DNA of 64,000 bases from Macrostomum lignano (GCA_002269645.1 NIVC01002709.1:124001-188000), one strand, 5' to 3'. Numbered from the stretch's first letter, positions 17,671-62,896 are shown. Program-made: numbers and translations. The notes: generated by a model from the sequence alone, not told the origin.

Positions 17671-17674
17671 ACCC

Positions 17675-23610: not shown

Positions 23611-23640
23611 TTATTTAAAAAGAAAATTTTAAATAAAATA

Positions 23641-24490: not shown

Positions 24491-24528
24491 AAGTTATATT
24501 TATTTACCATTTTTACTATTTTTATTTA

Positions 24529-35749: not shown

Positions 35750-36039
35750 GTAAAATGGTGTAGAAACAAACTTTTATTTGAAATTCAAGAGAAAGCAAGA
35801 GAAAAACTGAGTAACCAACAGAAGATAATGCGTTTATGAAACCAGTTCGCTACACTGTGCGAGTCCTTGATTAAGTTAAAATATAAAATATATGACAAAG
35901 CAATAATACTTCTGTGAAAGAATAGCAGCTGAAAACCCCGTGTCAAAACAAGGATAATATCAATGTAACAATTAATTACACCTGTTCTAATGGGCACATG
36001 CGCAACCGACAGCTCAGCCGCAGCTATTGCGCGGCGCAT

Positions 36040-36250: not shown

Positions 36251-36559
36251 CGACAACCAACTCAAAGCAAAGAGAATGTTTTAAAAAAGTGTTGCCTGCT
36301 GTACACAGCAGTTGGAAACCTCGGGAAAAAAACTCTTCGAATAACTCTGGGTTAATAAACAATAAAAAGTTGCTGTCTAATAAATAGACCAATGCAGTGA
36401 ACCGGAGGCAGCAGCAGCAGCAGCAGCCCATTACTGCTCCTAGAAGTCATCGAAGGCCACACGAACCGCTTGCCGGTCTCCTCAGCTCTCAGCATAGTAG
36501 TAAACCGACTGGAAGAAATAAAAGCTTCTGAGTTAATCTCACCTGAAACACCTGCTTAA

Positions 36560-39500
36560 TAAAAACTGAGTCTCACGTTGGGGTCGGGCGGCTTGGCAGC
36601 AGCCAGCAGCTCCACGGCCGCTCCTTGGCTGGTGACGCCAGCGGAGGCGGCGGCTGCTCGGGTCCGCTTCAGCACCGCGGCAGTCGCTGCGCCGCCCACT
36701 GCGACGGCTGCGGCCACCAAGCAGCTGATGACGACTGTCAGCAGCACACCGCTGTCAGAACTGCTTCTGCTTTTGGCGCTCGCTGAAGAACAAAATGTAC
36801 TTTGTGAGCAGTGATCGAACCCTGTGAGCATTCTCACACAAACCAAAACTTGAATGCTCACGGAACACGGCTCGAACAGTCCTCGAGCTCTTCACCGGTG
36901 AGAACACAGCGCCGAGACCGGGCCAGCTCTGGCTGATCAGACACGTCACAGTGACCTCATCCTGTCGCTCAAAGAACTGGTGAGTCAGTCGAGCTCTCCG
37001 AATCCAGCCTCCGTGGCTGCCTCTGAGATCGGGCTCAGGAGTGAGCTGCTCAGTAACATCGAAGGTCAAGTAGAGGGCCGTGAGTTATGACATTGAGAAT
37101 GCATGTACAGCAATGATGGACAGCAGCTTTGGTAGCAGCAAACATGAACTCACTGTGAGTCCTTCAATGCTGACTGTGTCGGACTTGATGGAGCAGTGCA
37201 GCTCGGGCCTCGGGTTTCCCTCCTGTGTCTGTCCCAGCAGACTCAGCTCAGAGCCGTTCAGCAGCTGGCCAGTCCAACCGATGCTGTTCGAAGGAACTGC
37301 AAGACAGTGCAATGACAGTTTTGCCTTCCATTTTGGTAAGTTACGTCGGGCTTGAACCTGTAGCTAGTGCATGCTTTCTGCTAGAATTTCGAGAGGTTCC
37401 TTCCTACTCACAGAACACAGTAATGTTTTGTACGAAATGTTACTCATTATCTCGCTTATCTATCACGTCTCCGCACATCACGGAGCGTCCGTTAATTCGC
37501 AAACAGCGTAGCGGGTCAGGGTTCCCGATACCATAATCTTTGGTCCTATTCAAGTACAAGCTAACAACAGGCACCATTGCCACAGCATCAATTAAAGGCT
37601 TAAAATTCAAAACGGGAATAAATCATTGTGTTCAGAGCTCGGTGCAGGTCTCAGTCATTGGTTCCATGAGTTGAATGCTCAATAAGGATAAGGATAAAGA
37701 TTCGTTTTTTACCCATCGCGAAAAGGTATATCATTGATGCATAATTCATTTCTGTCGACTGACAGTCTATGCCTCTAAACAGATTAAATAATAAATCAAC
37801 AATGAAATGGAACAAAGTGTAATTCACAAGTACGTTTCAATTGACACACCTGCAACAGGGCTCAGCAGGTAATTACTTACTTATTGTAACAAGTATGAAG
37901 CTGAAAACTCACAATAGACAGTAACGTTCTGTGTGAATCTGCCATCCACATCTTCGAGGCCATGCTGAGAGACCCTGCACTCCAAGGAGCCTCCGTTCAT
38001 CTGCCTTGTGGAACTCCAGCTGAACTCAGATTCCACCAGCGTCTCAACGCCTAGATTTTGAGCCTCGGGGGTGTTTTGGGCCCTGGTCATGCTGGTGCTG
38101 AGACCCTCGGCTGTCCGCAGCCAGCACCGGTGACTGGGCTCAGGGTTGCCACCAACTGACCGAACTGAGACTGACACGGGCTCGCCCTCCTTCATCACCA
38201 GAGGCTGAGTTGCATTCCATGAGCTGCTTGACGCGTCTGTTTTCGTGCAGGTGCGAGCATGGATGGCTAATTGTCTCAGCAATCTGAGTTGCTAATAGAT
38301 CAGAGATGCTGAACTGCAATCCACTCACATGACACATCGAGTTGCTCACTGCTGACATTCTGATTGAATACAAGTGTGCCGTCTGTACGAGTCTGAGCGA
38401 CCTGGCAGATGACTCTCATCTGGTTGTGGCTGGCCGATGCATTGAGTCGCCACACTGATGAAGCATTTGACTCAGATGGCAGCTGGAGTCAACAGAGTCA
38501 GTAATTTATAAATTTATGCATAATTTTTGCATTGACAATTCACAGTGAGTAACTCACTCTGAGCTGTTTCAGATTGGCTCCACCGATTGAGCAGAAGTGC
38601 TGAGCAGGCGGATTTCCTGTTTCCAGAGTCTGCAGGGTGACTTGAGCTTCTCTTCCACTGCGGATTCGTCCAGGAGGCAGCTTGATTGACAGGCCGGAGC
38701 TGCGGTCTGAAATGCAGTTCGGTATGGCAGTCAGGTGAGCTGCATTGGATCTAACTGGTGAACTGGTTCCGCATTGGATCTAACTGGTGAACTGGTTCCG
38801 CATTGGATCTAACTGGTGAACTGGTTCCGCATTGGATCTAACTGGTGAACTGGTTCCGCATTGGATCTAACTGGTGAGCTGGTTCCGCATTGGATCTAAC
38901 TGGTGAACTGGTTCCGCATTGGATCCAACTGGTGAGCTGGTTCCGCATTGGATCTAACTGGTGAACTGGAGAACATGCATCCAAGAACAAACAGAAGTAC
39001 ATGGACACTTACACAGAACTGCAGGCAGCTCGCGACGAGCCGTTACATCGAACAGTCCTGACTGGTTCACCCGACACAAAATTGATGCTGAGCTTCCCCA
39101 GCTCCTGCTCACAGTCACTGAGAATGTGCTGCTTGAGTTCGTGCTCTGAAAAGAGTCAGTTTTCACAGCTAAATTTCAGATCATTGTTGCCATGCACCCA
39201 ATACACAGGTGCAACCATGGGCCAGTGTGAGACTCACTGACAGCAGCTGAAGCGCTGTGTTTCCATTTCGCTGTGACTGCACAGAGCAGCTGTGGCTGAT
39301 TGGCATCCAGTAGCAACCCGGTGTGTCAGCTGTCAGATTGACGGCTGCTCCGTCTGTCCAGCTGGTGTTTGCGGGGAGCAGAAAGTGAGTGGTGCAGGGC
39401 TCTGGAAGGGTTTGAGTAGTGAGTGGTGCAGGGCTCTGGAAGAGTTTGAGTAGTGAGTGGTGCAGGGCTCCGGAAGGGTTTTAGTAGTAAGTGGTACAGG

Positions 39501-40700
39501 GCTCTGGAAGAGTTTGAGTAGTGAGTGGTGCAGGGCTCTGGAAGGGTTTGAGTAGTGAGTGGTGCAGGGCTGTAAGCCTGGGTTTGTAAGCCTGACTCAC
39601 TGGCTGACTACACACCCAGTGTGTGCGAAGTGCCAATCGCAGTCCCACCGTTGCAGCTGTGTCGGCACTTTAAAGCCGCCCCGTGCATTTCCATTTGCAC
39701 TGTAAAAGTTCTCAGAATCAGAGAGCTGGCCATGACCTCCCTCTGCAATGCGAACGCCCACCGGTGCTGTTAATTCCCATATCTGGTGCAAGCTCAAGTA
39801 TTTATCTCAATCGAACTCTTACCGAACTCAACTCCAAGAGGTCACTGCCTTTCCGCATTCTGATGCTGCAGTTTGATGCAGCAGGTGCTCTGCAGTTTCC
39901 TGGCAGCCGAGCTCGAATCATCACTTTCTCATTGAGCTTGAGCTGAGACAAGTCTTCCACAAAGCATCCCCTGGGTTGTTCTTTACAGAAGTCAGCTGGA
40001 GAGCAGCCAGAGCTGCTGTCTCTGTTACGCTGAAAGCAGTCACTTTTCTCAATTTCAAGCAGCACAAAGTTCATCATCTTGTCAGTCTGATTGGCCACGA
40101 ACTTCCTCAGCAGCACATACTGCGCCATCTGCAATGCGATGCTGCAACACTGCGAATTCCAATATTGAAAGAGTTGCAGCAACTGGGTGACAAACCTTGC
40201 CATCGGCCTCAGCTGAGCAGGTCACTTCATGCACCAAGTGCGACCTGAGTGAACTGCTGCTGTCATTTCTGGTGAAGCCGCAGTGTTGTGATCCGGACAG
40301 ACTGTGACTGAAAGCGGCTGCAGTGCAGTTGGGTGCATCCTCATCCAGACCGGCTGGCTTCTCCTCACTGAGCAGCACTTCGATGCCCAGGGCTCTGTGG
40401 CTGGCTGAGAAAAGTTTAGTGAGCAAAATCTGATTTCAAAATATCGTTCAGATTGATACTGAAATATGCGTAGGACTCACCCTCCTGTCTCCCATAGACA
40501 GTGATGGAGCGCACTGGGACACTTCGGGTCAGCTTCAGCAGCAGCCACTGGTAGCCGGAGGGGTCCGGAGTGTCGCTGGTAAGAAAATAGGCCCATTGCC
40601 CCGGCTTGTCCATTGATCTGATGAAGCAATCGCAGAATGCGTGATTGAAGACAGACGATTGCCAGGCATTGGCGATCTCAGCTCTGGAGACCTTGATGGC
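36560..40700 (-). CDS. Multi-exon host gene, copy C: F-type-lectin-like domain + several Ig-like domains + TM + short tail
   Basis: Exons with QSSVFNH...YQWLLLKLTRSVPVRSITVYGR / RALGIEV...TLSILEFAVL (FTP-like). Ig-like segments TFTVQMEMHGAALKCRH, STRQMNGGSLECRV and VTVTCLI. TM VLLTVVISCLVAAAVAVGGAATAAVL-KRTR. GT-AG boundaries seen. TAG at 39608-39610 where the paralog has CAG. Exon model is partial. Confidence 0.75.
38742..38968. repeat. 29-bp intronic VNTR (GCATTGGATCTAACTGGTGAACTGGTTCC)
   Basis: About 7.5 contiguous copies here and about 9 in the paralog (57274-57530). Confidence 0.95.
39385..39570. repeat. 34-bp intronic VNTR (GAGTGGTGCAGGGCTCTGGAAGGGTTTGAGTAGT)
   Basis: 5+ copies here and 4+ in the paralog (57947-58100). 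Confidence 0.95.
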
Positions 40701-41698
40701 ACAGCCTATGGATGTGGAGGTTCAACAACTTCGAAATATGACCTGTTATGAGACCATTTTGCGTTGTTTACGCTTTTGTCACAGTCAGCCAATTAGATAG
40801 AACTGCACGTAAGTCAACTACAACTCCATGGACATTTGCTCCATGGACAGCTAAAGCAGAAGAAAGTTTTCAGTGTTTTTTTAACTTCTGAACTTCTGGA
40901 TTCAAAATATAGCAAGTATGCCTTGTGTCCGAGGTACGCTCACCAGTTTACCAGTACGATTTCACTGGAACTGCTACCGGAGACCGGCAGATAAACACAC
41001 AGTTTCAGTGAACGAAATCTCAGCTGTTTCTGGTTGTAGTGTGCAAATTCTCCCCACAGAATTTCCCAATGGCGAAACCTCATCCAGAGCTTAGTTCTCA
41101 AAAACTGAAAACTTTCAATCCCACTAATCAGCATCAGCAAAAATAATTGAATTCTTTAAGGAGAAACAGTCGTAGTCACTTACTGTTACTTATACAGTAC
41201 GAAATGATTGCAAGGCACAGAAGTTCCTTCATGTGGACAGTCATATCGCAGAGCTGTACTTTGTAAAATAACAATTTTACATATAAGCTGCTGCTAGCAA
41301 CAGCTGTGGTATCGCTGGGCCTCCCAACCTTAGTCGAGCCGATGTTTATAGGAAAGCGGCAGGGCTGCGTGTGGAGGCGGAAATGCAGCCGCAGCCCATA
41401 GGCTGGAAGAAGATTGGCTGGCTCTGGCTGGCTGCAAAACAGGCAAGCGAGGTGCGAGATTGGAGGCCAATGAGGCTGGCGAAGATGGCGGAATCAGCAG
41501 CTTCTCTCAGCAGTGAGGGGCTTGAAGAAATGTGAGTACAGAAGATCCTCATTCATTTTCTGCCTGCCTGGGGGGTCTTTCTCAAAAGCAACTTATGATC
41601 GGCCATAGACGTAAGTTGGGGAGGAAGTGCCTGTGCTATAGAATCAAGAGTAATTTTAAGAGCTAGGAGGCTCCTTTAAGGAGACCATTTTAGGAGAC

Positions 41699-41893
41699 CA
41701 GTGGCGGATCCTGGGGGGGGGGGGCAAGGGGACCATGGCCCCCCCTCAGCTGCCTCGAAAAAAATTCTGCTCTTGGCCTTTGGCCCCCTTCTACCAGTAA
41801 GTAAAGAAAGGGCTTGGGCCTTGGGGTGGGTTCCTACTCGGGGCAGTATGAAAAAAGTTGGCCCCCCTCAATAAATTCCTGGATCCGCGCCTG
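41699..41893. mobile_element. hAT-type MITE (195 bp)
   Basis: TIR CAGTGGCGGATCC / GGATCCGCGCCTG with an 8-bp TSD TAGGAGAC on both sides. Confidence 0.9.
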
Positions 41894-42369
41894 TAGGAGA
41901 CCTCATAAAGGTTTCTGCAAGTGCTAAAGAATAAGGATTGAGGAGTTGGAGCTACTGTGGGTGCTGGGTGTTGCCGTTTCGGAGTGAATTTTAGGAGTGC
42001 GTGTCCTATAGAAGGAGCGAATTTCATTTCTAGCTCCTAACTCCGATAGTTAAGATTTCAAGGGCCAAATTGTACTCTTAGGTTAGTAGGAGTGTCTTTT
42101 TGTCATGTTTCGGACAGTGACCTGGGCTCTGACGATAAAGAAGCCAACGTTTGGCGACCCAGGCAATTCAGGCAAAGGATAAACTCTTCGAAGAATTTCG
42201 TACTGCATCTCGATTTCGGCTCAATAAGAGTCAACGCCAATTTCAACAAACATGTTGCATCTTAAAGCATCACGAATCAGCTTAGATTCCGACATGTACT
42301 ATTTTCTGTGAGCTGTTTTGCTGAGCACAATATTTACCACTTTTATGGTCTCTAATAGCACTCTAAGTA

Positions 42370-42910
42370 CGGCGTGGTGGTCGAGCTAATGAAAAACAAC
42401 GACTTTCTAGTCAAGCTGACCAGCGGCCGGGTTCTTCGGAGAAACCGAAAGTTCCTACGGAGAAGGTTTCCAGCACATGCGGCGGAAGCTCGCTACCAGC
42501 CCAATACTGGCCCTGCGGACTCGCAAGGTACGAATGGAGCCAGAGGGCCGGAAGGACGATCAAGACCGTGGCATACGAGAAACCGTCGGCCACCCAACAG
42601 GCTTCAGATTGACCCCCGCAAAAGTTCGTACGACTGACTGACAAGAAGTCACATTGTAACTGAAGGGGGAGGTGTTGTGTATGAGTGTGCATATGCATGT
42701 GTGTGACACTGAAGCTTGGGCTATACTCGTATGAATATTACTGTCTATGGTATAAATACACGTGACGGCCTAGAGAGACGGCCATGCCCTCTGAGCTTTA
42801 GTTTCATCAGACCGCGCGCTATAGAAGATATAACCCTCTCGGCTTCGCGATATATAACACCTTCACCCTTCTTATACAATATTTCTTATACCAGAGTTAG
42901 TTGTTTATCA
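42370..42910 (+). mobile_element. 3' relic of an LTR retrotransposon (integrase tail, PPT, LTR start)
   Basis: SGRVLRRNRKFLR, PPT GAAGGGGGAGG then TG at 42673. The LTR end is uncertain. Confidence 0.7.
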
Positions 42911-43589
42911 AATGGGAGCAATTAACTAACGATAGCAGTTAAACCATTTACTATTGACTTGGTCTATCAACTAATTAAATGCGCAGGCTTGTAGTCTAAA
43001 ATGGTTTTATTGCTTTACACGCTCGTAGCTCACGAGAGCCGCTTTTCACAGGGCAATAAAAGCTTGTTGTTGTTGCATACTCCTTAAAAGTGCATATATT
43101 TAGGAGGAGTTTAATATAGCACGCAGATTGGCCAGACTTCTTAGCCAATCACGCATCGGCAATTCTAGGATTGCAATCTGTGAAACTTACTCAGGCAGAA
43201 TAAAACAAAACAAAACCAATTCAGACAATCTTCAAAACTCCTAAAACAAAAAAATTTTCAGCTTCAGTAATACTTTATTTTTGCAACGCTTTATTCGCAT
43301 TTCTGATTAACGGAGTAATAAAACAATCAGATAAGAGTTATCAATCAGTCAGTCAATCAGTCACTGGAACACACGCAAGTCAGAGAGGCAAGCAAAGCTA
43401 CTCAATCAGTGATTATCAAACGCCATTGGCAGGAGTCGGACTCCCCATCGGTTCTGCTGTGGAGCTCAAATGACAAAATAAAAAGTTAAAACAAGGAAAA
43501 GCGAGGCGATCGACAGAAATATTCGGCGAAATGTTTCAGCCAGCAGTCCGAAAAAGGGGATCAGGCCGCAGGGAGGATGATAAACAGTT

Positions 43590-43800
43590 TATAGCAGTGC
43601 AGGTGCGCTTAACCGATTGGTGCAGCTGCACCAGAGCAGTGCAGTGCCCGGTGCGAGGGTGCAAATCCTGCGGCTCTGATCCCCTTTCCTCAGGGCAGTG
43701 CTGAACGGCCATGCAAAAAGAGCGAAAAGTACACAAACCGTCAAGTAAAAGTGCAAGCGGTAAAATAAATCTATATTTCGATACATATCGGTAGGTTGCA
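43590..43800 (-). CDS. Candidate first exon (signal-peptide-like) of the receptor gene
   Basis: MYRNIDLFYRLHFYLTVCVLFALFAWPFSTA is on the same strand upstream of the lectin exons. Linkage is not demonstrated. Confidence 0.35.
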
Positions 43801-43842
43801 TTCGCTGAAACTCTTGAAACTCAGTCAAGAGATAAGAGATAC

Positions 43843-44355
<513 letters not shown>

Positions 44356-44889
44356 ATTTTAGTGTTTACTAAATAACACATTAAACCATTTACATTTCCA
44401 GTTAAACAAAAGGTCTTCAGAACTTGGGCTCCAACAACCAAAGAGGAAATCCAAATAAATCAATATCTCAAAGCTCAATTCCATTGCCAACACTCACAGA
44501 GAAGTGCTAGAAGAAGTGGCTCATCAGAATCAAAGACTCCGGAATGCTTGCAGTGTGTGAAGAGAGACGGATATGCATAGAAACAGCAGAGGTGCATTAA
44601 TCAGTTCTGATTGTTAGTGCTGGATTTCAGTAAAAAAGAACATAAGCTAAAAACTGTACCAGTTAAAATGATGAATAACAAGCATCGAATTTATGGCATT
44701 TTTATGTACAGGAAACCAAAATTAAATGAAATTTGGAAGTGAATCATGTTGCACATACAACAAATAATGTACTCATTTAGTATGACTGCCTGTTAAATTA
44801 GAATGGATTGCTAATCTACAATAGCATACAGTAAGACTAGCAATCCGATTATAGATAAAATTTGTGGCATAAAAATCGGCATACAGCTT

Positions 44890-45950
44890 CAGTGAGCATT
44901 CTGTTGACTTCGCGGACACAGCGGTCGCCAGGTCATTAATATACACCAGTCAGAGGGTGGGGGCGAGAACGCTACCCTGTGTTAGGCCCTCGTGGAAGAT
45001 GCGCTCCTTGCTAATGCTAATGCTAATTGCTAATGCTAATGCTAATGCTAATGCTAATGCTAATGCTAATGCTAATGCTAATGCTAATGCTAATGCTAAT
45101 GCTAATGCTTGCTAATGCAGTTGTTCACGCGCACTCTGGCTCGGCGATCCGTCAGAAAAGTGCGGATCCTGCGGATGACGTCTCTTTGGACGCCGAGTTC
45201 CCGCAGTTTCTTTTACAGTGCCGCGCGCCAGACTCTATCGTAGGCGCGGCTGAAGTCGAAAAGACAAAGAATGGACCGGAGATGCGGGGTAGACTCCAAT
45301 TTGTCGAAAATTTCCTGACAGGTGCTCGCAATCAATTCCTCCGTAGAGCGGCCCTTGCCTGAGGTTTCGAGGGCATGGCGGAGACGCTGGAGGACCAGCC
45401 GCTTTGCCAGTTTGGCTATACAACTCGTGAGGGCGACTGGGCGGTAGGAGTCAGGCTTGCTGGCGTCCTTTCCCTTTTTTGGAACGGAATGATGATGGCT
45501 CATTTCCATTGCCAAGGACATTCCCCCTTCTGCCAAGAGCGGTTAGTGATGGACAGGGTCCTGTCATCCGTGGAGGGTGGGGGTGCTTTAGCATTTCATT
45601 GGTGACGCCATCCTGCCCGGGGGCCTTGCAGACTTGCGGATGGCATTACAGTGCTCCGGGTTGCTGAAGGGCGAGCAGATACCACTTCGAGCTCCGTGCC
45701 CGTCACAGCAGTGTTCTTTAAGCACCTCGTTGGCTGGTCGGGTCACTGGGCGGTCCCTAGGGCTGGTTGCGACCCTGGAGACGGCGCTGTAGATCTGACA
45801 GAAAAGATTCGCCTTCTCTAGATCGGTACTCGCTGGTCTGCTGGGTGCGACGGGTCCCATTTGGGGGGGGGGGACTCGCTGCTCGGGTTGCTTGGGCCTT
45901 CTCCCCGCATTTGCTACTGAATGGCTAGAAGCAGCAAATGTAGGCATTTT
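44890..45950 (-). mobile_element. Degenerate non-LTR retrotransposon RT fragment interrupted by (GCTAAT)n
   Basis: SYRPVALTSCIAKL, LFDFSRAYDRVW, GLTQGSVLAPTL...VYINDL. Hexamer array at ~45008-45118. Confidence 0.85.
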
Positions 45951-46054
45951 TTATTGAATTTTTAAATCACTGAATCGGAAAGAGCAACTATTTGGGAAGC
46001 GGAAATCATTCACTGTTTTTGTCTTTGCTTTTATCTCTGTGTTGGCTGGCGGGC

Positions 46055-46400
46055 GAGGTGGGTGAAGGAGTGAGGTGGGTGATGGTAGTGAGGTGGGTGA
46101 AGGAGTGGGATGGGCGATGGTAGTGAGGTGGGTGATGTTAGTGAGGTGGGTGAAGGAGTGGGATGGGTGAAGGAGTGAGGTAGGTGATGGTATGAGGTTG
46201 GCGATGGAGTGGGATGGGAGAAGAAGTGAAGTGAGTGAACCAGTGAGGTGGGTGAAGGAGTGGGGTGGGTGAAGGAGTGGGTGGGTGAAGGAGTGGGGTG
46301 GGTGAAGGAGTGGGTGGGTGAAGGAGTGGGTGGGTGAAGAAGCTGGTGGGTGAAGGAGCGGGTGGGTGAAGGAGCAAGTGGGTGAAGGAGCGGGTGGGTG
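46055..46400. repeat. G-rich degenerate minisatellite (GGTGGGTGAAGGAGT)n
   Basis: Direct inspection. Confidence 0.9.
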
Positions 46401-46519
46401 AGAGAGTATGATTAAAGTAGGCCTAATGTTACCTAGGGGATAAGGTTGATTTACTAATTTTTCGACTGCATACAAAGCAAATCAGTTTAAAGAAGATCAG
46501 CCAAAACTAGTTTTTACTA

Positions 46520-47236
46520 AATACACAGATACATAGATACATAGATGCATAGATGCATAGGTACATAGATACATAGAAACATAGATGCATAGATAAATAT
46601 ATACATAGATACCTAGATGCATAGGTACATAGGTACATAGATACATAGATACATAGGTACATAGGTACATAGGTACATAGATACATACGTACATAGGTAC
46701 ATAGTTACATAGATATATAGATACATAGATACATAGATACATAGGTACATAGGTACATAGGTACATAGATACATAGATATATAGATACATAGATACATAG
46801 ATACATAGATACATAGGTACATTGGTACATAGGTACATAGATAAATAGATGCATAGATACATAGATCCATAGATACATAGGTACATAGGTACATAGGTAG
46901 GTACATAGGTACATAGGTACATATGTACATAGGTACATATGTACATAGGTACATATGTACATAGGTACATAGGTACATTGGGACATAGGTACATTGGTAC
47001 ATAGGTACATAAATACATAGGTACATAGGTACATAGGTACATAGGTACATAGATCCATAGATACATAGATATATAGATACATAGATACATAGATGCATAG
47101 GTACATAGGTACATTGGTACATAGGTACATAGGTACATAGATACATAGATGCATAGATACATAGATACATAGATACATAGATACATAGATACATAGGTAC
47201 ATAGGTACATAGGTACATAGGTACATAGGTACATAG
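46520..47236. repeat. 8-bp satellite (TACATAGG/TACATAGA)n
   Basis: Direct inspection. Confidence 0.98.
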
Positions 47237-48261
47237 GTCCGACTAGATAAGTAGGTTTTTTGAGACAATAAATTTTCAAGTCTTTTCATTCTTCGCATCC
47301 AGCATCATTTTCGAAATTAATATTCGCCTCTACTACTTGTAAAAGTAGCAGGTAGCAGTTAATCATTAAGAAATTATTAATTTTGTGTAAATAATCTTCA
47401 TTTCGAAATTGCATGCCCCAGCAAGTCAACGAATAATCGATGCACATGTGACTGAATAAACAATTAAACCTGTGTTTGGATGTGGCTTACAATGTTCAGA
47501 GTGGAAAGGTGGAAATTTTAGACGAGCATTTCATTCCAAGGATTTTTTATTTATTAATTTGTAAGAAATTCTGCTTAACGTAATCTATTTTTAGTAACAA
47601 AGCAGCTAAAAGCAGAAAACTAGTGGGACGCCAAGGTCTGTTAAATAAAGCTACTCAAATCACTTAAAGGGTTGTTTGTGATTCCTCTTGTCACGTTTTC
47701 AGTACGTGAATTCTAGGATCTGCTTCAGGAATAACTTTTCATCCACATGGCCGGGGTGAGAGGGAATATCAGGCAATCTCCTCCTCTGGCAAGCATGCTT
47801 TTGCTATTTTAGTAGCTAAATAGCTAACCCTCAGGAAAGCCTGCTTATAGATTTATACATGCCTTAGAAGAGAAAGTAAACTGGTTCCATTTGCTAGTGG
47901 TGCGCATAGCAACTTATTAATGTAATTATCTTAATTGAACTTAATTGATTTAATTAATATGTGTGTAAAAATACAAAATTAAATATAAAATTTTAAACAA
48001 TAGTTTTTAGCCAGGTGTATTAAATATATAAAGATAATTAACATTGGAACAATTGTATTGATAAAATGTATCAGTATGTAGCAGTGTTAAGTAATTATGA
48101 GGCGTGAAGGCAGCAGTTCCGAAGGTTTGTTTTTGTTTAGCAGTTTAGGTTTTGAGTGTAGTTAGGCTTGTTAGACTTGAGTACATATAGTGTCGGGTGG
48201 CTTTATTTAATTTCATAGAAAATTATAAATTTCGGAAATATTCGGAAAGCATGTGCTCAGC

Positions 48262-50862
48262 AGGAGGGAAACACAGAGAGGGGAGGCAGAGAGACACAGA
48301 GAGGGGAGGCAGAGAGACACAGAGAGGGGAGGCAGAGAGAAACAGAGAGGGGAGGCAGAGAGACACAGAGAGGGGAGGCAGAGAGACAGAGAGAGGGGAG
48401 GCAGAGAGACAGAGAGGGGAGGCAGAGAGACAGAGAGGGGAGGCAGAGAGAGAGAGGGGGAAACAGAGAGACAGAGAGGGGAGGCAGAGAGACACAGAGA
48501 GGGGAGGCAGAGAGACACAGAGAGGGGAGGCAGAGAGAGACAGAGAGGGGAGGCAGAAAGACACAGAGAGGGGAGGCAGAGAAAGACAGACACAGAGAGG
48601 AGAGGCAGAGAGAGAGAGAGAGAGAGAGACAGAGAGGGGAGGCAGAGAGACACAGAGAGGTGAGGCAGAGAGACACAGAGAGGAGAGGCAGAGAGAGAGA
48701 GAGACACAGAGAGGGGAGGCAGAGAGACACAGAGAGGGGAAGCAGAGAGACACACAGAGAGGGGAGGCAGAGAGACACAGAGAGGGGAGGCAGAGAGACA
48801 CAGAGAGGAGAGGCAGAGAGAGAGAGAGACACAGAGAGGGGAGGCAGAGAGACACAGAGAGGAGAGGCAGAGAGAGAGAGACACAGAGAGGGGAGGCAGA
48901 GAGACACAGAGAGGGGAGGCAGAGAGACATAGAGAGGGGAGGCAGAGAGACACAGAGAGGGGAGGCAGAGAGATACAGAGAGGGGAGGCAGAGAGACACA
49001 GAGAGGGGAGGCAGAGAGACACAGAGAGGGGAGGCAGAGAGACACAGAGAGGGGAGGCAGAGAGACATAGAGAGGGGAGGCAGAGAGACATAGAGAGGGG
49101 AGGCAGAGAGACACAGAGAGGGGAGGCAGAGAGACACAGAGAGGGGAGGCAGACAGACACAGAGAGAGGCAGAGAGACACAGAGAGGTGAGGCAGAGAGA
49201 CACAGAGAGGAGAGGCAGAGAGAGAGAGAGACACAGAGAGGGGAGGCAGAGAGACACAGAGAGGGGAAGCAGAGAGACACACAGAGAGGGGAGGCAGAGA
49301 GACACAGAGAGGGGAGGCAGAGAGACACAGAGAGGAGAGGCAGAGAGAGAGAGACACAGAGAGTGAAGAGTTGATTCGGGAGGTGATCAGTCTCTCGAAA
49401 ACTCCCACTTCCAGACACTTAAGCCTGGGAACAAAATAAAGTGATCACTTACTGTTGCGGGCTCCTCTTCTGTGGAGTGCAGGTTCTCCGAGCTCGTTTC
49501 TTCTAATCTTCTTCTTCTGTGTAGTGCAGGTTCTCCGAGCTCGTTTCTTCTAATCTTCTTCTTCTCCGGAGGAATCTTCTTGAAGTCTCGAATCGGCCGA
49601 ATGAGAGCGTGACGATCAAATCAGGCGACGTCGCAGTATTTCTCGAATGCAAATCAATATAGGCCTTACGCTCAGTAATCAATATCAACGATGCGCCCTT
49701 GTAATAAAATCAACTTTCTGTAATAATCACGAGGACCTCCAAGAGGGGCGTCTTCTTCTAGATCTAACGGAATCGGAGTCGTGTGCTCCTATCGGTTAAT
49801 CTAGGATAACCAAAATCAATCAATCGATAATCCTCTAAGGGTATCGGAATCGGTCCGCAGATCCTATCCAATCCCTTAGGAAAATGGGAGGCCTCAAATT
49901 CAATGAACTCAGTCCAAACGACTGGACAGTAGCGGCCGGCAATAAATCGCTCTCAAAATCAATAACAAAGGCTCGAGCAACGGCTCACCAATTGGTTTAT
50001 CTCTCTCTCTCTCAGAGATGTAGCCTCGCTTAGCTGTTCCAGCAAGCTCCAAGATCTTTAGAGGCTGCTCCGAGTCCCAAGATCTTTTGAGGCTGCTCCG
50101 AGTCTGAGATTTTTAGCTCGGATTTTGGCTTGTATTTATAGGAAAAATTCTTGAGAAACAGCTTATTTTTAGTAGGTGACAGTTTAGCGCTTTGGAAATT
50201 TGGCCCCTATGGAATACATTAGGTTTGAGCGTCAATACCATATTCGGAGTTCTAAATTTAAGTGTTGCAAAAGATGGTCATTTGTTGCTTTCGTGGTCTT
50301 TAAAAATAGAGTGTGACAATTTGCAGTTTTTACATCATTCAAGTTTTTCGCATTTTTATGTTACTACTTACAGTAGTCTGCTTGTAATGCCTCTGGAGAT
50401 CTCTACAAGAGGGGAGGCAGAGAGACACAGAGAGGAGAGGCAGAGAGACATAGAGAGGGGAGGCAGAGAGACACAGAGAGGGGAGGCAGAGAGATGCAGA
50501 GAGGGGAGGCAGAGAGACACAGAGAGGGGAGGCAGAGAGACACAGAGAGGGGAGGCAGAGAGACACAGAGAGGGGAGGCAGAGAGACATAGAGAGGGGAG
50601 GCAGAGAGACATAGAGAGGGGAGGCAGAGAGACACAGAGAGGGGAGGCAGAGAGACACAGAGAGGGGAGGCAGACAGACACAGAGAGGAGAGGCAGAGAG
50701 ACACAGAGAGGGGAGGCAGACAGACACAGAGAGGAGAGGCAGAGAGAGAGAGAGAGACACAGAGAGGGGAGGCAGAGAGACACAGAGAGGAGAGGCAGAG
50801 AGAGAGAGACACAGAGAGGGGAGGCAGAGAGACACAGAGAGGGGAAGCAGAGAGGAAGACAC
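48262..50862. repeat. ~23-bp purine-rich satellite (GGCAGAGAGACACAGAGAGGGGA)n split by a solo LTR
   Basis: Arrays at 48262-49363 and 50408-50862. Confidence 0.97.
49364..50407 (-). mobile_element. Solo LTR (1044 bp)
   Basis: Ends TGAAGAG...CTCTACA (6/7 inverted), flanked by AGAG on both sides. TATA-like CTATAAATAC on the minus strand near 50135. Confidence 0.7.
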
Positions 50863-51759
50863 GGTTAAATTGCCTTATATAGAAAGTGTTGTTTACACGG
50901 AAATTTCTAGAAGGCTGGATACGATAACAGTCCCCCCACGCCGGGGTTGGAGTCCTGACGGAGTAAGGGAGAAGTATCTACTTTACATTTACAGAGATGG
51001 ACCTTGATACAATCGCCTGCTAGTACTGGGTGATACATATACTTCAGGTAGCGACATGTAGGTGTGGTGCTGTCACAAATGTTCAGGTTACAATGCTACC
51101 AGAATTTCTATTATTGAATCAATAATTTCGGAAACAATCAGGTACTTGTGTATTTTTAGTAATCGACAAGCTATAAACTAAGGACAGAAAATCGGTCAGG
51201 AAGTCACATGTTTACCTCACATATATACACTCATGATTTGTCTGTGGCGTTTCCAACTATATATGGCATTCACCGCTGGCATGCGATGAGCCGCGCCGAA
51301 GGTAAACAAGCCGTGTTTAGCATTACTGCAGCCTTCGGCTCGCTGCCATAAATAGGTGCCAATCTTTCTAAAAAAAGGGATCGAGTGGAATTTAAATGAG
51401 GTAAAATTATAAATGTATCGCCAACACGACAATCATTGAAATTAATTGAAATTGAAGCCCGGACCGTATTGTGTACTGCGTGAAACTATGCAAAATGCAC
51501 AGAAGTGTTCTGTGTCTCCATGCGCTCGAATAGAAACAAACTTTTTATTGAAATTCAAGAGAAAAACAAGAGAAAAGCTGAGTAACTATACAAAAGATAA
51601 TTGTTTAAAAACAATTCACTGCACTTTTTGCGATCCTTGATTGAGTTAAAGAATAACATATATGACAAAGCAATAACGTTTCTGTGAAACATGGCAGCAG
51701 AAAACCCAGTGTCAAAGCAAAGATAATAATAATAATTTGACTACACCTTTCTTAACGTG

Positions 51760-53998
51760 TGTAGCGAGTGAATCAAAACGCAGTGGAATTTGTTTTGTGG
51801 AAGTGAGATAGAACGGTTGTAAACCCTTGACGGGCTCTAACTTCGGCTTTATTCGATTTTAGAGACAGTAACGAGAACAGCTTAAGAATATCGTCTAGGG
51901 CCAAAAGGGACTCGCTGCTAGCTGATTAATGCTTCTCACTGCTACAAGATACTCCCCCTCCTAGATGAAGTACATCACTATGCATTATCTAATCGGAGAC
52001 AAAAAGTTCGAACAGCGCAGGGGAACGAGTAGGTAAGCAATGCAGATGTCATAGGTTGATCAGTTTATGAACACTGTTCAGGTATTGCTAGGTGGACTGT
52101 CCTTCTGGAAAACTTGCACGGAGGTCTCGCTCTTGAATCGCACGCGATTTGCGCTGCGCGACCTTGTGTTAGAGGCGGGAGCGTCGCTTGGCGGGGCCGG
52201 TGTAGCTGCTGGCTGCTCTAGTTGGGCTATTGGTAGGGTGGCGGGCTTGACACGATCGATCGACACTACGGTAGGCTTGCCGTTGATCTTGAGTGTCATT
52301 GTGGTGTCGTGCCTGTCCAGTACGGCGTACGGGCCTTGGTAAGGAGCCTCCAGGGGTCGTCGCACCCGGTCCAACCGCAACCAGACGTGTGTGCACGAAC
52401 TCAGCGCGGCTGGCAGATGCACGGCTATCTCGCGCGTTCTCAGCTGCCGGTATGGGAAGAAAAGCTGATGTAGGCTAGTCGAGAGCTCCTTGAGCGCAGA
52501 AGTGTCGATGACGACTGGTGGGACCAGCGGTTGCTCACCCGTAACAACGGAGAACGACGGGCAGCTGCTGCAGCCAGTTCTTGCCGCGCGCCTTCAAACC
52601 GAGCTTCAGCGTCCGGTGTGCACGTTCGATGACACCGTTTGCTCTCGGATTATAGGCTGAAGTGCGGATGTGGTGGATGCCGAGTAGGTCCGTCAAGTTT
52701 CTTATGAGCTCCGCTCGGAATTGGGATCCCTGGTCACTGATCAGCGTCAAAGGTGGGCCTTTGCGTCAAAGGCGTCAAAGGTGGGCATCCGCAGGTATTC
52801 GAACGAGCCGAACGGGGTACAAATCGCCGTCTTCTCGATGTCCTCATCTGCCATCGGAACGAAGTGATAGGCCTTGACGAGGTCAAGAGTGCTGAAAACT
52901 TTCGCACCGTGCAGCTGATGATGGAAATGGTTGATATTAGGGATAGGGTAGCGGTCTGGCTTGGTTGCCGCGTTTAAGGCTCGATAGTCTCCGCAAGGTC
53001 TCCAGGAGCCGTCCTTTTTCTTCACCATGTGAAGCGGGGAGGCCGACAGACTGGCGGAGGGGCGGACGATGCCAAGGCGCAGTGAGCTTGTCGAACTCCG
53101 CTTTTGCAACCGCGAACTTGGCAGGGGCAAGCGGTCGCGGTCGACAAAAAATGCGCTCGCCAGTGGTCTCAAAACGATGCCGAACCGACGTGGCGGGTGC
53201 TGCGGTGTAGTCCGGAGCTTCCAGAACTCGAGGGAACCGAGCAAGCGGTGTGGTGGGCTCAAGCAGCGTGTTGGCGTTGATTTGAGGGACTGAATCACTA
53301 GAAGAACAGAGAGTCGCACGCAAAGATGTCACAGGGTCTTGAATGCGCCGTGAATTCAGGTCAATTAGGAGACCGAGCTTGAGGAAGAAATCTGCACCGA
53401 GGATTGGCGCAGTACTAGTAACAATGAACGTCGCAAGGGTATAGTCTAGGTTCGGATTTTGCCGCCTTCGACGCCACAAAGCTTGACATAAGTGGGTACG
53501 AGTAGATTTTGAGGAACAAACTGCAAAGGAAGGAGCGACCGTTCGGCGCCGGTGTCAACGATGAACGAAACGGGCGCACGGAGAACTTGGCAACGAAGCA
53601 GCAACGTGGTGGCCTTTGACGGGTCGCGGCTCGGCCGAGGCACATGACCGACTATTTTGACGCCTGGCTTGGCGTCGGGCTGGACGCCCGGGACTGAACC
53701 GGAGTGGGCTGACGGCTGGCCAGCAGTGTCGGCGGTTTCGAGCCTGGCCACTGGCACCATGGTCGACAGGTGCGAGCATCGGCAGCGTAGTAGAGATGAC
53801 CGTTGCAGATCTTGGGTCGTCGGCGTGAGTTCCGGTTGGAGCACGAGTCGTCGGGCTTCCTGTTACGAAAAGAACCAGCGTTGCCTCTCAGGTGCTCTTG
53901 GCCGGTGGCCGAGGTGCGGTTTACAGAGGCGAACGGGGTGGCGCAACCGGCGACAGCCAGCATGCTGTCGGCGATCTTTGCAAACCACTTTGCAGACC
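51760..53998 (-). mobile_element. Internally deleted Gypsy element (Gag end, PR, half RT fused to IN, PPT, 3' LTR)
   Basis: FIVDTGAERS; [23 protein letters not shown]...TPFG; ISDQGSQF...NGVIERAHRTLK; GPY.V. PPT at 51952-51959. LTR 51760-51946 has TGTAGC...GCTACA. Confidence 0.92.
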
Positions 53999-54175
53999 AC
54001 CGCCACACACCCTCAATTACCCCAGCTAATGCTGGCACCCATTTTACAGCTTGGTGAACTGAAGCAATGCAGAGTTGAATTGAGTGTCTTCCTCAAGGAC
54101 AGAATTGTTCCGAATGGGACGAGAATCGAACCTCTGATCTTTCAGTCGTGAATCCGACGCTCTAACCACTATAAC
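53998..54175 (-). mobile_element. tRNA-derived SINE (paralog of 36040-36250)
   Basis: Shared TTACCCCAGCTAATGCTGGCACCCATTTTACAGCT core and box B. Confidence 0.8.
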
Positions 54176-54182
54176 CCACTAT

Positions 54183-54780
54183 AAATTAATGAATAATTAA
54201 TAAATTTTAACATTCCAAAAGTCTGAATATTAAACAAATTTTAACATTTCAAGTCAGAATAATTAACAAATTTTAACATTTCAACTCTGAATAATTAACA
54301 AATTTTAACATTTAAAGTCTAAATAATTAATAAATTTTAACATTCCAAAAGTCTGAATAATTAACAAATTTTAACATTTAAAGTCTGAATAATTAACAAA
54401 TTTTAACATTTCAAGTCTAAATAATTAATAAATTTTAACATTCCAAAAGTCTGAATAATTAACAAATTTTAACATTTAAAGTCTGAATAATTAACAAATT
54501 TAAACATTTCAAGTCTGAATAATTAACAGATTTTAACATTTAAAGTCTAAATAATTAATAAATTTTAACATTCAAAAAGTCTGAATAATTAACAAATTTT
54601 AACATTTAAAGTCTGAATAATTAACAAATTTAAACATTTCAAGTCTGAATAATTAACAGATTTTAACATTTAAAGTCTAAATAATTAATAAATTTTAACA
54701 TTCAAAAAGTCTGAATAATTAACAAATTTTAACATTTCAGGTCTGAATAATTAACAAATTTTAACATTTCAAGTCTGAAT
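54183..54780. repeat. AT-rich ~29-bp satellite (GTCTGAATAATTAACAAATTTTAACATTT..)n
   Basis: About 20 copies, absent from the first duplication unit. Confidence 0.95.
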
Positions 54781-55169
54781 ACGAGCGTACTTAACAACAT
54801 CTTGTACCTTTAACAGAGACCTCTTCGCAAAATGAGAAACAGATCCATGTAAATATCAGCTTCTCCTCCTGCAACACGGCAACGAGTGAAATTTTCAAGT
54901 ATGAGCTGAATATTAAAAAAATTATCAAAAATTACAAGCCATATTGATTTGCTGAGCGCGTTAAATGAATCTGGATAAGACAAGAACGAGAATTCATCTG
55001 TTAGTTAGTGTCAAATATCAGTACGGGAAAAGCTCACAAAAAACTGCATCGCAAGCCATACACCGCCTCCTCAGAAGCCATCGGATGCCTCACGGACCGC
55101 GTGCCGCTCTCCTCTGCTCACAGCACAGTAGTAAACCGACTGGAAGGAATAAAAGTGTTGCTGAGTTAT

Positions 55170-58100
55170 TCTCACATGAAATGCCTGCTTGATACAAGCT
55201 GAGTCTCACGTTGGGGTCGGGCGGCTTGGCAGCAGCCAGCAACTCCACGGCCGCACCCTGGCTGGCAGCGGCGGCTGCCGCGGCAATCGCTGCGCCGTCC
55301 ACTGCGCCCGCTACCAGAGCTGCCTGTAGCGCACGCTGAAGGACAATGTGTACTTTGTGAGCAGTGATCGAACCCTGTGAGCATTCTCACACAAACTAAA
55401 ACTTGAATGCTCACGAAACACGGCTCGAAAAGTCCTCGAGCTCTTCACCGGTGAGAACACAGCGCCGAGACCGGGAAAGCTCTGGCTGATCAGACACGTC
55501 ACAGTGACCTCATCCTGTCGCTCAAAGAACTGGTGAGTCAGTCGAGCTCTCCGAATCCAGCCTCCGTGGCTGCCTCTGAGATCGGGCTCAGGAGTGAGCT
55601 GCTCAGTAACATCGAAGGTCAAGTAGAGGGCCGTGAGTTATGACATTGAGAATGCATGTACAGCAATGATGGACAGCAGCTTTGGTAGCCGCAAACATGA
55701 ACTCACAGTGAGTCCTTCAATGCTGACTGTGTCGGACTTGATCGAGCAGTGCAGCTCGGGCCTCGGGTTTCCCTCCTGTGTCTGTCCCAGCAGACTCAGC
55801 TCAGAGCCGTTCAGCAGCTGGCCAGTCCAACCGATGCTGTTCGAAGGAACTGCAAGACAGTGCAATGACAGTTTTGCCATCCATTTTAGTAAGTTACGTC
55901 GGGCTTCAACCTGTAGCTAGTGCGTGCTTTCTGCTAGAAGTTCGAGAGGTTCCTTCCTACTCACAGAACACAGTAATGTTTTGTACGAAATGTTACTCAT
56001 TATCTCGCTTATCTATCACGACTCCGCACATCGCAAACAGCGTAGCGGGTCAGGGTTCCCGATACCATAATCTTTGGTCCCATTTAAGTACGAGCTAACA
56101 ACAGCCACCATTGCCACAGCATCAATTAAAGGCTTAAAATTCAAAACGGGAATAAATCATTGTGTTCAGAGCTCGGTGCAGGTCTCAGTCATTGGTTCCA
56201 TGAGTTGAATGCTCAATAAGGATAAGGATAAAGATTCGTTTTTGACCCAACGCGAAAAGTTATATCATTGATGCATAATTCATTTCTGTCGACTGACAGT
56301 CCATGCCTCTAAACAGCTGATAAATAATTTATAAATCAACAATGAAATAGAACAAAGTGTAATTCACAAGTACGTTCCAATTGACCTGCAACAGGCTCAG
56401 CAGGTAATTACTTACTTATTGTAACAAGTATGAAGCTGAATACTCACAATAGACAGTAACGTTCTGTGTGAATCTGCCATCCAGATCTTCGAGGCCATGC
56501 TGAGAGACCCTGCACTCCAATGACCTTCCGTTCATCTGCCTTGTGGAACTCAAGCTGAACTCAGATTCCACCAGCGTCTCAACGCCTAGATTTTGAGCCT
56601 CGGGGTTGTTCTGGGCCCTGGTCATGCTGGTGCTGAGACCCTCGGCTGTCCGCAGCCAGCACCGGTGACTCGGCTCAGGGTTGCCACCGACTGACCGAAC
56701 TGAGACTGACACGGGCTCGCCCTCCATCATCACCAGAGGCTGAGTTGCATTCCATGAGCTGTTTGACGCGTCTGTTTTCGTGCAGGTGCGAGCATGGATG
56801 GTTAATTGTCTCAGCAATCTGAGTTGCTGATGGATCAGAGATGCTGAACTGCAATCCACTCACATGACACATCGAGTTGCTCACTGCTGACAGACTGATT
56901 GAATACAAGTGTGCCGTCTGCATGAGTCTGAGCGACCTGGCAGATGACTCTCATCTGGTTGTGGCTGGCCGATGCATTGAGTCGCCACACTGATGAAGCA
57001 TTTGACTCAGATGGCAGCTGAGTCAACAGAGTCAGTAATTTATAAATTTATACATAATTTTTGCATTGACAATTCACAGTGAGTAACTCACTCTGAGCTG
57101 TTTCAGATTGGCTCCACCGATTGAGCAGAAGTGCTGAGCAGGCGGATTTCCTGTTTCCAGCGTCTGCAGGGTGACTTGAGCTTCTATTCCACTGCGGATT
57201 CGTCCAGGAGGCAGCTTGATTGACAGGCCGGAGCTGCGGTCTGAAATGCAGTTCGGTATGGCAGTCAGGTGAGCTGCATTGGATCTAACTGGTGAACTGG
57301 TTCCGCATTGGATCTAACTGGTGAACTGGTTCCGCATTGGATCTAACTGGTGAACTGGTTCCGCATTGGATCTAACTGGTGAACTGGTTCCGCATTGGAT
57401 CTAACTGGTGAACTGGTTCCGCATTGGATCTAACTGGTGAACTGGTTCCGCATTGGATCTAACTGGTGAACTGGTTCCGCATTGGATCTAACTGGTGAAC
57501 TGGTTCTGCATTGGATCTAACTGTTGAACTGGAGAACATGCATCCAAGAACAAGCAGAAGTACATGGACACTTACACAGAACTGCAGGCAGCTCGCGACG
57601 AGCCGTTACATCGAACAGTCCTGACTGGTTCACCCGACACAAAATTGATGCTGAGCTTCCCCAGCTCCTGCTCACAGTCACTGAGAATGTGCTGCTTGAG
57701 TTCGTGCTCTGAAAAGAGTCAGTTTTCACAGATAATTGTCAGATCATTGTTGCCATGCACCCAATACACAGGTGCAACCATGGGCCAGTGTGAGACTCAC
57801 TGACAGCAGCTGAAGCGCTGTGTTTCCATTTCGCTGTGACTGCACAGAGCAGCTGTGGCTGACTGGCATCCAGTAGCAACCCGGTGTGTCAGCTGTCAGA
57901 TTGACGGCTGCTCCGTCTGTCCAGCTGGTGTTTGCGGGGAGCAGAAAGTGAGTGGTGCAGGGCTCTGGAAGGGTTTGAGTAGTGAGTGGTGCAGGGCTCT
58001 GGAAGGGTTTGAGTAGTGAGTGGTGCAGGGCTCCGGAAGGGTTTGAGTAGTAAGTGGTACATGGCTCTGGAAGAGTTTGAGTAGTGAGTGGTGCAGGGCT

Positions 58101-59240
58101 GTAAGCCTGGGTTTGTAAGCCTGACTCACTGGCTGACTGCACACCCAGTGTGTGCGAAGTGCCAATCGCAGTCCCACCGCTGCAGCTGTGTCGGCACTTC
58201 AAAGCCGCCCCGTGCATTTCCATTCGCACTGTAAAAGTTCTCAGAATCAGAGAGCTGGCCGAGACCGCCCTCTGCAATGCGAACGCCCACCGGTGCTGTT
58301 AATTCCCATATCTGGTGCAAGCTCAAGTATTTATCTCAATCGAACTCTTACCGAACTCAACTCCAAGAGGTCACTGCCTTTCCGCATTCTGATGCTGCAG
58401 TTTGATGCAACAGGTGCTTTGCAGTTTCCTGGCAGCCGAGCTCGAATCATCACTTTCTCATTGAGCTTGAGCTGAGACAAGTCTTCCACAAAGCATCCCC
58501 TGGGTTGTTCTTTACAGAAGTCAGCTGGAGAGCAGCCAGAGCTGCTGTCTCTGTTACGCTGAAAGCAGTCTCTTTTCTCAATTTCAAGCAGCACAAAGTT
58601 CATCATCTTGTCAGTCTGATTGGCCACGAACTTCCTCAGCAGCACATACTGCGCCATCTGCAATGCGATGCTGCAACACTGCGAATTCCAATATTGAAAG
58701 AGTTGCAGCAACTGGGTGACAAACCTTGCCATCGGCCTCAGCTGAGCAGGTCACTTCATGCACCGACTGCGACCTGAGTGAGCTGCTGCTGTCATTTCTG
58801 GTGAAGCCGCAGTGTTGGAATCCGGACAGACTGTGACTGAAGTTGGCAGCAGTGCAGTTGGGTGCATCCTCATCCAGACCGGCTGGCTTCTCCTCACTGA
58901 GCAGCACTTCGATGCCCATGGCTCTGTGGCTCACTGAGAAAAGTTTAGTGAGCAAAATCTGATTTCAAAATATCGTTCAGATTGATACTGAAATGTGAAG
59001 GGAGGACTCACCCTCCTGTCTCCCATAGACAGTGATGGAGCGCACTGGGACACTTCGGGTCAGCTTCAGCAGCAGCCACTGGTAGCCGGAGGGGTCCGGA
59101 GTGTCGCTGGTAAGAAAATAGGCCCACTGCCCCGGCTTGTCCATTGATCTGATGAAGCAGTCGCATTCTGGGTGATTGTAGACAGACGATTGCCAGGCAT
59201 TGGCGATCTCAGCTCTGGAGACCTTGATGGCACAGCCTGT
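55170..59240 (-). CDS. Multi-exon host gene, copy D: lectin + Ig domains, TM segment deleted and frameshifted
   Basis: Collinear with copy C, a few percent diverged. The 3' exon lacks the VLLTVVISCLVAAAV-encoding segment. Confidence 0.72.

Positions 59241-62371: not shown

Positions 62372-62896
<525 letters not shown>

Follow-up and report, generated by a model that had tools for sequence, protein, structure and literature searches.

F-type lectins are soluble proteins with single or tandem F-type lectin domains (FTLDs), known from structures such as the eel agglutinin (AAA, 1K12) and FBP32 (3CQO). Their fucose-binding motif HX24RXDX4(R/K) and the Ca2+ motif h2DGx have been defined (PMC5712786). 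The partner domains named in reviews of these lectins are CTLD, pentraxin, CCP, transmembrane (TM) and FA58C. Immunoglobulin (Ig) domains are not among them, and the architectures catalogued there include no membrane receptor in which an Ig stalk bears a single FTLD. Both F-type lectins and receptors of the Ig superfamily (IgSF) are central to self/non-self and gamete recognition in invertebrates. This report describes a 64,000-nucleotide stretch of the Macrostomum lignano genome (GCA_002269645.1, NIVC01002709.1:124001-188000; the window, with positions counted from its first letter), which carries two minus-strand genes combining an FTLD-like head with Ig-like domains, copy A (41244-36556) and copy B (59775-55172). 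These are probably tandem paralogues of a Macrostomum-restricted family of type I membrane glycoproteins (FTLD, Cys-rich module, four Ig-like domains, TM helix and tail) in a decaying birth-and-death locus. The architecture is best classed as a variant within known kinds, unnamed and unannotated.

Among described proteins, Drosophila furrowed and CG9095 likewise present an FTLD in a type I membrane ectodomain and are implicated in cell adhesion. In these two it is accompanied by a CTLD and numerous CCP (sushi) repeats, in the window gene by Ig-like domains, and an exhaustive phmmer search of 1.84 billion representative proteins detected no sequence relationship to them outside the FTLD. The FTLD of CG9095 also departs from the basic triad (PMC5712786). 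The mollusc FREPs, CREPs and GREPs share the concept of a lectin fused to IgSF domains in a lineage-specific, multi-copy lophotrochozoan family. In these secreted proteins the lectin is C-terminal and of the fibrinogen, C-type or galectin class, whereas in the membrane-anchored window protein it is N-terminal and an FTLD; Pfam matched no fibrinogen, CTLD or galectin domain there. Receptors of the Siglec, SIRP and CD22 type offer a functional analogy only, with a distal ligand-binding head, a stalk of C2-type Ig domains and a TM helix. Their head is a V-set Ig domain, that of the window gene a predicted F-type jelly-roll. Nectins and SYG-2 (nephrin type) provide the best sequence and structural matches of the Ig-like repeats, respectively, but contain no counterpart of the FTLD head or the Cys-rich module.

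The model of copy A was built from stop-to-stop frames, database proteins and the sequence itself. The coding sequence (36556-41244) comprises 13 exons and 817 codons including one in-frame TAG. All introns are of the GT-AG type and the donors are mostly GTGAGT or GTAAGT. Exon 1 (41184-41244) holds the start codon and a probable signal peptide (MTVHMKELLCLAIISYCISNS); the database protein P0005 begins at the same Met. Exon 2 (40481-40705) encodes the first part of the FTLD (AWQSS...QWLLLKL...SITVYGRQE), exon 3 (40196-40404) its middle (SHRALGIEVLL...CSAEADGK) and exon 4 (39823-40128) its last strands (MAQYVLLRKF...MNFVLLEIE) together with the start of the Cys-rich module, which ends in exon 5 (39601-39742), the exon that holds the TAG. 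Ig-like domain 1 is split between exons 6 (39238-39401) and 7 (39013-39145), domain 2 between exons 8 (38558-38706) and 9 (38329-38482) and domain 4 between exons 11 (37154-37296) and 12 (36862-37048), while domain 3 is encoded entirely by exon 10 (37913-38266). Exon 9 is missing from most database models. Exon 13 (36556-36782) encodes a stalk, the TM helix (GVLLTVVISCLVAAAVAVGGAATAAVL), the tail and the stop.

The same 13 exons are found in copy B on the same strand, at 59775-59715 (exon 1), 59236-59012 (exon 2), 58933-58725 (exon 3), 58657-58352 (exon 4), 58271-58130 (exon 5), 57964-57801 (exon 6), 57708-57576 (exon 7), 57240-57092 (exon 8), 57017-56864 (exon 9), 56801-56448 (exon 10), 55849-55707 (exon 11), 55601-55415 (exon 12) and 55335-55172 (exon 13). 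Frames are open in exons 1-9, 11 and 12. An initial annotation of this DNA, made from the sequence alone, had placed spliced minus-strand genes at 36560-59240, in which a lectin-like domain is joined to several Ig-like exons and followed by a TM helix with a short tail. Genes with GT-AG introns do exist close to these positions, but a TM helix is encoded by copy A only, and the range, roughly right, leaves out exon 1 of copy B (59775-59715). Four of the motifs quoted for the lectin-like domain (QSS, QWLLLKL, SITVYGRQE and HRALGIEV) are exonic. The fifth, TLSILEFAV, is a translation of the 67-nt intron 3 (40195-40129, minus strand), as is evident from the database models and from the identical position and phase of this intron in the transcript-annotated paralogue P0013. 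Read-through of the intron into this motif ends at a stop, and splicing over it leads from ...CSAEADGK into MAQYVLLRKFVANQTDKMMNFVLLEIEK.

Independent support for the gene model comes from P0013 (about 29% identical; BOX15_Mlig012130g1 in the NCBI annotation of GCA_002269645.1; L001 4223-15969, not in the window), because it shares the intron positions and phases of the FTLD and the pattern of exon pairs. P0013 also has 13 exons, and its first three introns correspond to those of the window gene in position and phase. The first follows the signal peptide and the second R-x-x-E, both in phase 1; the third, in phase 0, precedes (M/L)xx(Y/F)(V/I)LLR. Downstream, both genes follow a (1-0)(0-1) exon-pair pattern. 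Three Ig-like domains of the window gene each lie on such a pair. Compared to P0013 there is an additional symmetric 1-1 exon, exon 10, which corresponds to one entire Ig-like domain. The best database match of the gene has an E-value of 5e-218, and all six matches (down to 7e-104) are predicted proteins of M. lignano.

Two introns contain minisatellites. The 34-bp array of intron 5 (copy A 39384-39571, 5.5 units; copy B 57947-58100, 4.5 units) consists of units that each copy the splice acceptor of exon 6 and its first ~17 nt. Intron 5 therefore has several tandem decoy acceptors, and the intron itself is open in all three frames. A 29-bp array is present in intron 7 (copy A 38742-38969, 7.9 units; copy B 57276-57532, 8.9 units).

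The relationship of the N-terminal domain to F-type lectins becomes visible with profiles. Pfam searches with raw open reading frame (ORF) pieces and with a first, mis-spliced concatenation gave no match for the lectin-like part. With the correctly spliced domain, only F5_F8_type_C was found (E=0.22, 12.1 bits against a cut-off of 28.2), and for the best member of the family the models F5_F8_type_C_2 and F5_F8_type_C give E=0.0022-0.006. Single-sequence phmmer against the PDB returned 0 matches, and word-indexed protein searches returned M. lignano proteins only. The exhaustive phmmer search gave 16 matches, 14 of which are M. lignano paralogues with 30-95% identity. The other two are FTP/FTLD repeat proteins from Tigriopus californicus (E=1.7e-4), named 'Fucolectin tachylectin-4 pentraxin-1 domain-containing', and the fish Trematomus bernacchii (E=2.9e-4). 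Furthermore, a profile of ten family domains selected only FBP32 (3cqo, E=9.8e-8, both domains) and AAA (1k12, E=0.0098) from the PDB, and the profile-profile comparison with canonical FTLD repeats (hhalign) yielded a probability of 92% (E=5.8e-7).

The AlphaFold2 model of this domain is an all-beta sandwich (predicted local distance difference test, pLDDT, 69.9; predicted template modelling score 0.74), a predicted jelly-roll. All Foldseek matches of the model are galactose-binding-domain-like (SUN, muskelin discoidin, F5/8C, CBM32 and F-lectins) and the F-lectin structures among them are 3cqo, 1k12, 3lek and 2j1r. Segments shared with F-type lectins are AxQSS, W-hydrophobic-x-(L/V)xL, R-x-acidic-x3-R and the C-terminal strands '(R/Q)YVxL ... 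hydrophobic-L-x-E-hydrophobic-E'. The predicted model supports the galactose-binding-like fold class. The specific F-type ancestry is supported as well, its basis being the sequence profiles. The N-terminal domain is accordingly described here as a predicted, highly divergent FTLD with putative sugar binding. The fusion of an F-type-lectin-like domain to Ig-like domains, proposed earlier from a matched residue pattern, is upheld by profile methods and not by that pattern.

The FTLD is followed by a module of roughly 120 residues (residues ~195-315) with eight conserved Cys. Searches of this module against the PDB and Pfam gave no match. The four Ig-like repeats (exons 6+7, 8+9, 10 and 11+12) can be aligned with each other and with the repeats of the paralogues, the anchors being two invariant Cys and a GNPxP motif. 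A profile of these repeats matches the C2 domain of nectin-4 in the PDB (E=1.7e-4), followed by antibody constant domains (Ig CL) and Ig modules of titin. With Pfam C2-set_2, exon 10 of the window gene scores 19.9 bits (cut-off 21), and the paralogue P0006 is at the threshold with 21.4 bits. The canonical pattern of a disulfide between the B-strand and F-strand Cys together with a C-strand Trp was not found in the repeats of the family. The two invariant Cys are separated by about 49 residues. The first of them stands where the canonical Trp would be (GNPEPSHRC compared to GSPAPSVTW), and the B-strand Cys is absent. In this respect the repeats differ from those of nectin and SYG-2, with which they share the 'G-x-P-x-P' motif of the B-C loop. 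This arrangement would imply either an unusual disulfide between the C-strand and the F-strand or free Cys. Ig domains in which Cys replaces the canonical Trp are an oddity of this family.

The multi-domain AlphaFold2 model was made with a proxy, the database protein P0001, and not with the window gene itself. In this model the domain of exons 6+7 is confident (pLDDT 70-88); the stalk is all-beta throughout and the other domains are of low confidence. Foldseek with the stalk model ranks SYG-2 first (2.3e-8), together with SIRP-alpha/gamma, CD22, titin and filamin. For CD22 and SIRP-alpha, homology to the window gene does not exceed the generic Ig fold.

In copy A, exon 13 codes for a clear TM helix followed by a tail of 38-45 residues, depending on the chosen end of the helix. 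The TM helix of the window subfamily contains no charged residue. The tail of the window gene lacks an immunoreceptor tyrosine-based inhibitory or switch motif (ITIM or ITSM), defined as (S/I/V/L)xYxx(I/V/L) or TxYxx(V/I). The ectodomain contains 14 N-glycosylation sequons.

The two genes lie in the arms of one large direct duplication, revealed by self-comparison of the window (36767-45459 against 55320-64000, 95.5-98.9% identity). The block on the side of copy A covers the gene body from exon 1 to exon 12 and ~4.2 kb upstream, and the block on the side of copy B extends to the end of the window. Both appear recently homogenised. On the 3' side of exon 12 the arms are collinear at just 74-87% identity (34.7-36.9 kb for copy A, 51.1-55.5 kb for copy B), and the 3' flank of copy B is broken up by a 32-bp satellite and by remnants of long terminal repeat (LTR) retroelements. 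These identities are most simply read as an old tandem duplication, of which the 5' 8.7 kb (upstream region and exons 1-12) was later homogenised to 95-99%, with the breakpoint directly upstream of exon 13 at about 36767/55320. Gene conversion or unequal exchange may have brought about this recent homogenisation. The locus would then be a snapshot of birth-and-death evolution and an example of old tandem duplicates that were partly re-homogenised and afterwards decayed in both copies.

Damage is found in each gene. In copy A, a TAG interrupts the frame at 39608-39610 (minus strand); the codon is CAG (Gln) in copy B and in every database paralogue. In copy B, the splice acceptor of exon 10 is changed from AG to AA (56802-56803, minus strand) and exon 13 (55172-55335, minus strand) is degenerate. 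Two deletions (52 nt and 30 nt) have removed the TM coding sequence and shifted the frame, and the original stop TAA has become CAA. The frame that continues from the acceptor encodes a 53-residue tail rich in Arg, Cys and Gly without a TM helix. Most likely, both copies are non-functional or at best aberrant in this haplotype, and the predicted product of copy B could only be a secreted form that lacks Ig-like domain 3. The copies differ at 53 of 2227 exonic nucleotides, and equal-length introns differ by 1.5%. The ratio of nonsynonymous to synonymous divergence (dN/dS, Nei-Gojobori) is 0.67 at a dS of 0.032, which argues for relaxed constraint.

The initial annotation had counted at least four paralogous 3' ends. 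Two of these are true gene ends; the others are an orphan TM exon and a scrap of tail and 3' untranslated region (3'UTR). The orphan is a homologue of exon 13 (7976-8217, minus strand; 85-88% identical) with intact acceptor, TM helix, tail and stop. It has no upstream family exons and adjoins transposon- or virus-like ORFs. The scrap (33913-34059, minus strand) is 147 nt long and matches the last ~49 nt of the coding sequence and the 3'UTR of exon 13. Beyond these and copies A and B, no family exons are present in the 64-kb window. Additional gene copies, a third near 8 kb and a fourth near 34 kb, were considered and rejected, since further exons are absent at both places. The 'tandem family' proposed for this DNA consequently amounts, within the window, to two tandem copies that are both damaged. 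Its birth-and-death in a region rich in transposable elements holds, given the two damaged copies, the two tiers of identity and the retroelement remnants. Directly upstream of the orphan exon, short transposon- or polymerase-like ORFs without Pfam matches lie at 8281-8949 (minus strand). They may mark an insertion that cut the exon off its gene.

Several observations weigh against the proposed assignment to a decaying locus of FTLD-Ig membrane receptors. On the side of the gene, a weak GTGTGT donor lies 15 nt upstream of the TAG in copy A and would on paper bypass it in frame, and in copy B, splicing that leaves out the symmetric exon 10 would on paper preserve the frame. The TAG and the change from AG to AA could also be assembly errors or specific to this haplotype. 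All database proteins of the window subfamily are older ab initio models, and none is part of the transcript-based NCBI set. On the side of the protein, the proxy model of P0001 is poor overall (pLDDT 50); downstream of residue 465 this is because P0001 lacks exon 9. The Foldseek TM-scores of the N-terminal model are just 0.35-0.46, with FTLDs ranked no higher than SUN and discoidin domains. The canonical fucose-binding His is not kept, the aligned position being occupied by the Asp or Thr of 'SDT'. The Ca2+ motif h2DGx is absent: hhalign places 'CFIRS' opposite 'AIDGN', and the family consensus has no DG there. With neither the canonical His nor the Ca2+ motif conserved, glycan binding is not assured. 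The family has a conserved His of its own, 3-4 residues upstream ('YFHT'), which sits opposite another His of AAA and not the canonical one; in both window copies it is Leu.

These residues bear on the possibility that the F-type ancestry was kept but the lectin function lost, leaving a jelly-roll that binds protein or lipid as in discoidin/F5-8C, SUN or XRCC1-N domains. This is a real possibility, if not the one we favor. It agrees with the missing His and Ca2+ motif, with the scores below all Pfam thresholds (the FTP-type models fail) and with the Foldseek ranking, in which SUN and muskelin discoidin domains equal true F-lectins. Departures from the motif, perhaps with loss of sugar binding, are known in other FTLDs (PMC5712786). 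On the other hand, GRQEVSHR of the window gene aligns residue by residue with NRNEVPER of a fish FTLD and NRDSFEKR of the FBP32 C-domain. Its basic triad thus keeps the two Arg, the salt-bridging acidic residue is preserved as well, and the spacing is that of these two lectin domains. Among all PDB chains, the sequence profiles select F-type lectins only.

In the preferred reading, a Macrostomum family of FTLD-Ig membrane glycoproteins, the protein would serve as a cell-surface recognition or adhesion receptor. The membrane-distal FTLD would bind a glycan or another ligand, with the Ig stalk keeping it clear of the membrane. Since RNA interference, in situ hybridisation and transgenesis are available in the laboratory model M. 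lignano, the function is open to direct tests.

The family is confined to M. lignano among the proteins searched with phmmer. At least 12 near-identical predicted proteins belong to the subfamily of the window genes, and there are about seven divergent subfamilies. Pfam lists no domain for any family member and UniProt names them 'Ig-like domain-containing' or 'uncharacterized', consistent with the earlier remark that the family carries no name. The UniRef names 'Apple', 'ZP', 'FAD_binding_2' and 'Fibrinogen C-terminal' on family fragments were disregarded, as nothing in the sequences corresponds to them. A literature search for the family, its locus names or FTLD+Ig architectures found no reports. 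Outside the window, the NCBI annotation contains paralogues with longer tails. Those of P0013, P0024 and P0026 carry an ITIM-like VVYAQV and an ITSM-like TEYTEI, and that of P0027 an ITSM-like TEYLDI. Since two transcript-annotated subfamilies bear such ITIM/ITSM-like tyrosine motifs, signalling via SH2-domain proteins is probable for the family as a whole. A C-terminal T-E-Y-x-x-I is kept in two subfamilies that share only ~30% FTLD identity.

A role in reproductive or cell-cell recognition (sperm-egg, sperm-female-tract or tissue adhesion), with gene turnover driven by sexual selection, is unlikely. The Ig-like repeats are closest to adhesion molecules, with nectin-4 and SYG-2 as the top matches, and the family is found in Macrostomum only, a genus whose reproductive genes are known to evolve fast. 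FTLD proteins are documented both in fertilisation (oyster bindins) and in adhesion (Drosophila furrowed) (PMC5712786). The ITIM/ITSM-like tails of the paralogues, on the other hand, are more typical of immune-type signalling. Such tails are also carried by adhesion receptors such as PECAM-1.

The initial annotation had favored a diversified immune receptor. Innate pattern recognition by tandem expansion and diversification of the lectin head against microbial glycans, as in mollusc FREPs, is quite improbable. A lectin-like head on an IgSF body, paralogues with ITIM/ITSM-like tails and the self/non-self recognition served by known F-type lectins (PMC5712786) are in line with it. So are the lineage restriction and the number of copies of the family; this number, however, may be inflated by the redundant, partly polyploid assemblies of M. 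lignano. The FTLD exons of copies A and B differ by 4.4% and the adjacent introns by 0-1.3%, an excess that could point to diversification. The dN/dS of the FTLD is 0.55 (0.75 in the remainder), not above 1, and positive selection on the FTLD was therefore rejected for this pair. Mosaic gene conversion fits better than selection, because dS and dN of the FTLD are both raised and its variant residues recur in other paralogues. Comparison of the two copies at the DNA level gave no sign of diversifying selection (dN/dS 0.55-0.75), and the window pair yields no evidence of diversification in the style of FREPs. With only two copies in the window, both damaged, and with the fucose-binding His and Ca2+ site missing, the claim of a diversified immune receptor is unsupported here.

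An independently evolved Siglec-like glycan-sensing system, turning over rapidly through tandem duplication, gene conversion and pseudogenisation, with long-tailed ITIM/ITSM signallers such as P0013 and P0027 and short-tailed or secreted decoys or partners such as the motif-free window subfamily, would if true represent paired receptors of immune type in a flatworm, with an F-type lectin as their basis, but we regard it as highly doubtful.

The remaining window contains mobile elements and simple repeats. Inverted repeats of ~420 bp with 95% identity (10576-10994 and 25976-26391) flank ~15.8 kb. Between them are ORFs at 11262-12999 (minus strand), one with a double-jelly-roll capsid-like domain (PF21738, E=4e-8), which suggests that 10576-26391 is a virus-type transposon similar to Maverick/Polinton elements. 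A degraded LTR-retroelement lies between the gene copies at 52000-53900 (minus strand), with matches to an aspartyl protease (E=0.005), RVT_1 (E=3.6e-11) and an integrase core (E=0.0016). Another RVT_1 fragment (45213-45536, minus strand, E=2e-6) is located at the distal edge of the duplication block of copy A. Rfam and tRNA scans of the window found nothing. Micro- and minisatellite arrays at 43844-44355, 46055-47238, 48271-49348, 50408-50854 and 54190-54781 occupy a large part of the spacer that separates the copies. They consist of (GTCT)n, the 8-bp unit TACATAGG, 23/46-bp purine-rich units and the 32-bp AT-rich satellite, and these dense arrays account for the long spurious ORFs of the spacer. 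Downstream of copy A, a local inverted repeat of ~200 bp with 86-87% identity is present at 35210-35755 (35216-35415 against 35749-35550).

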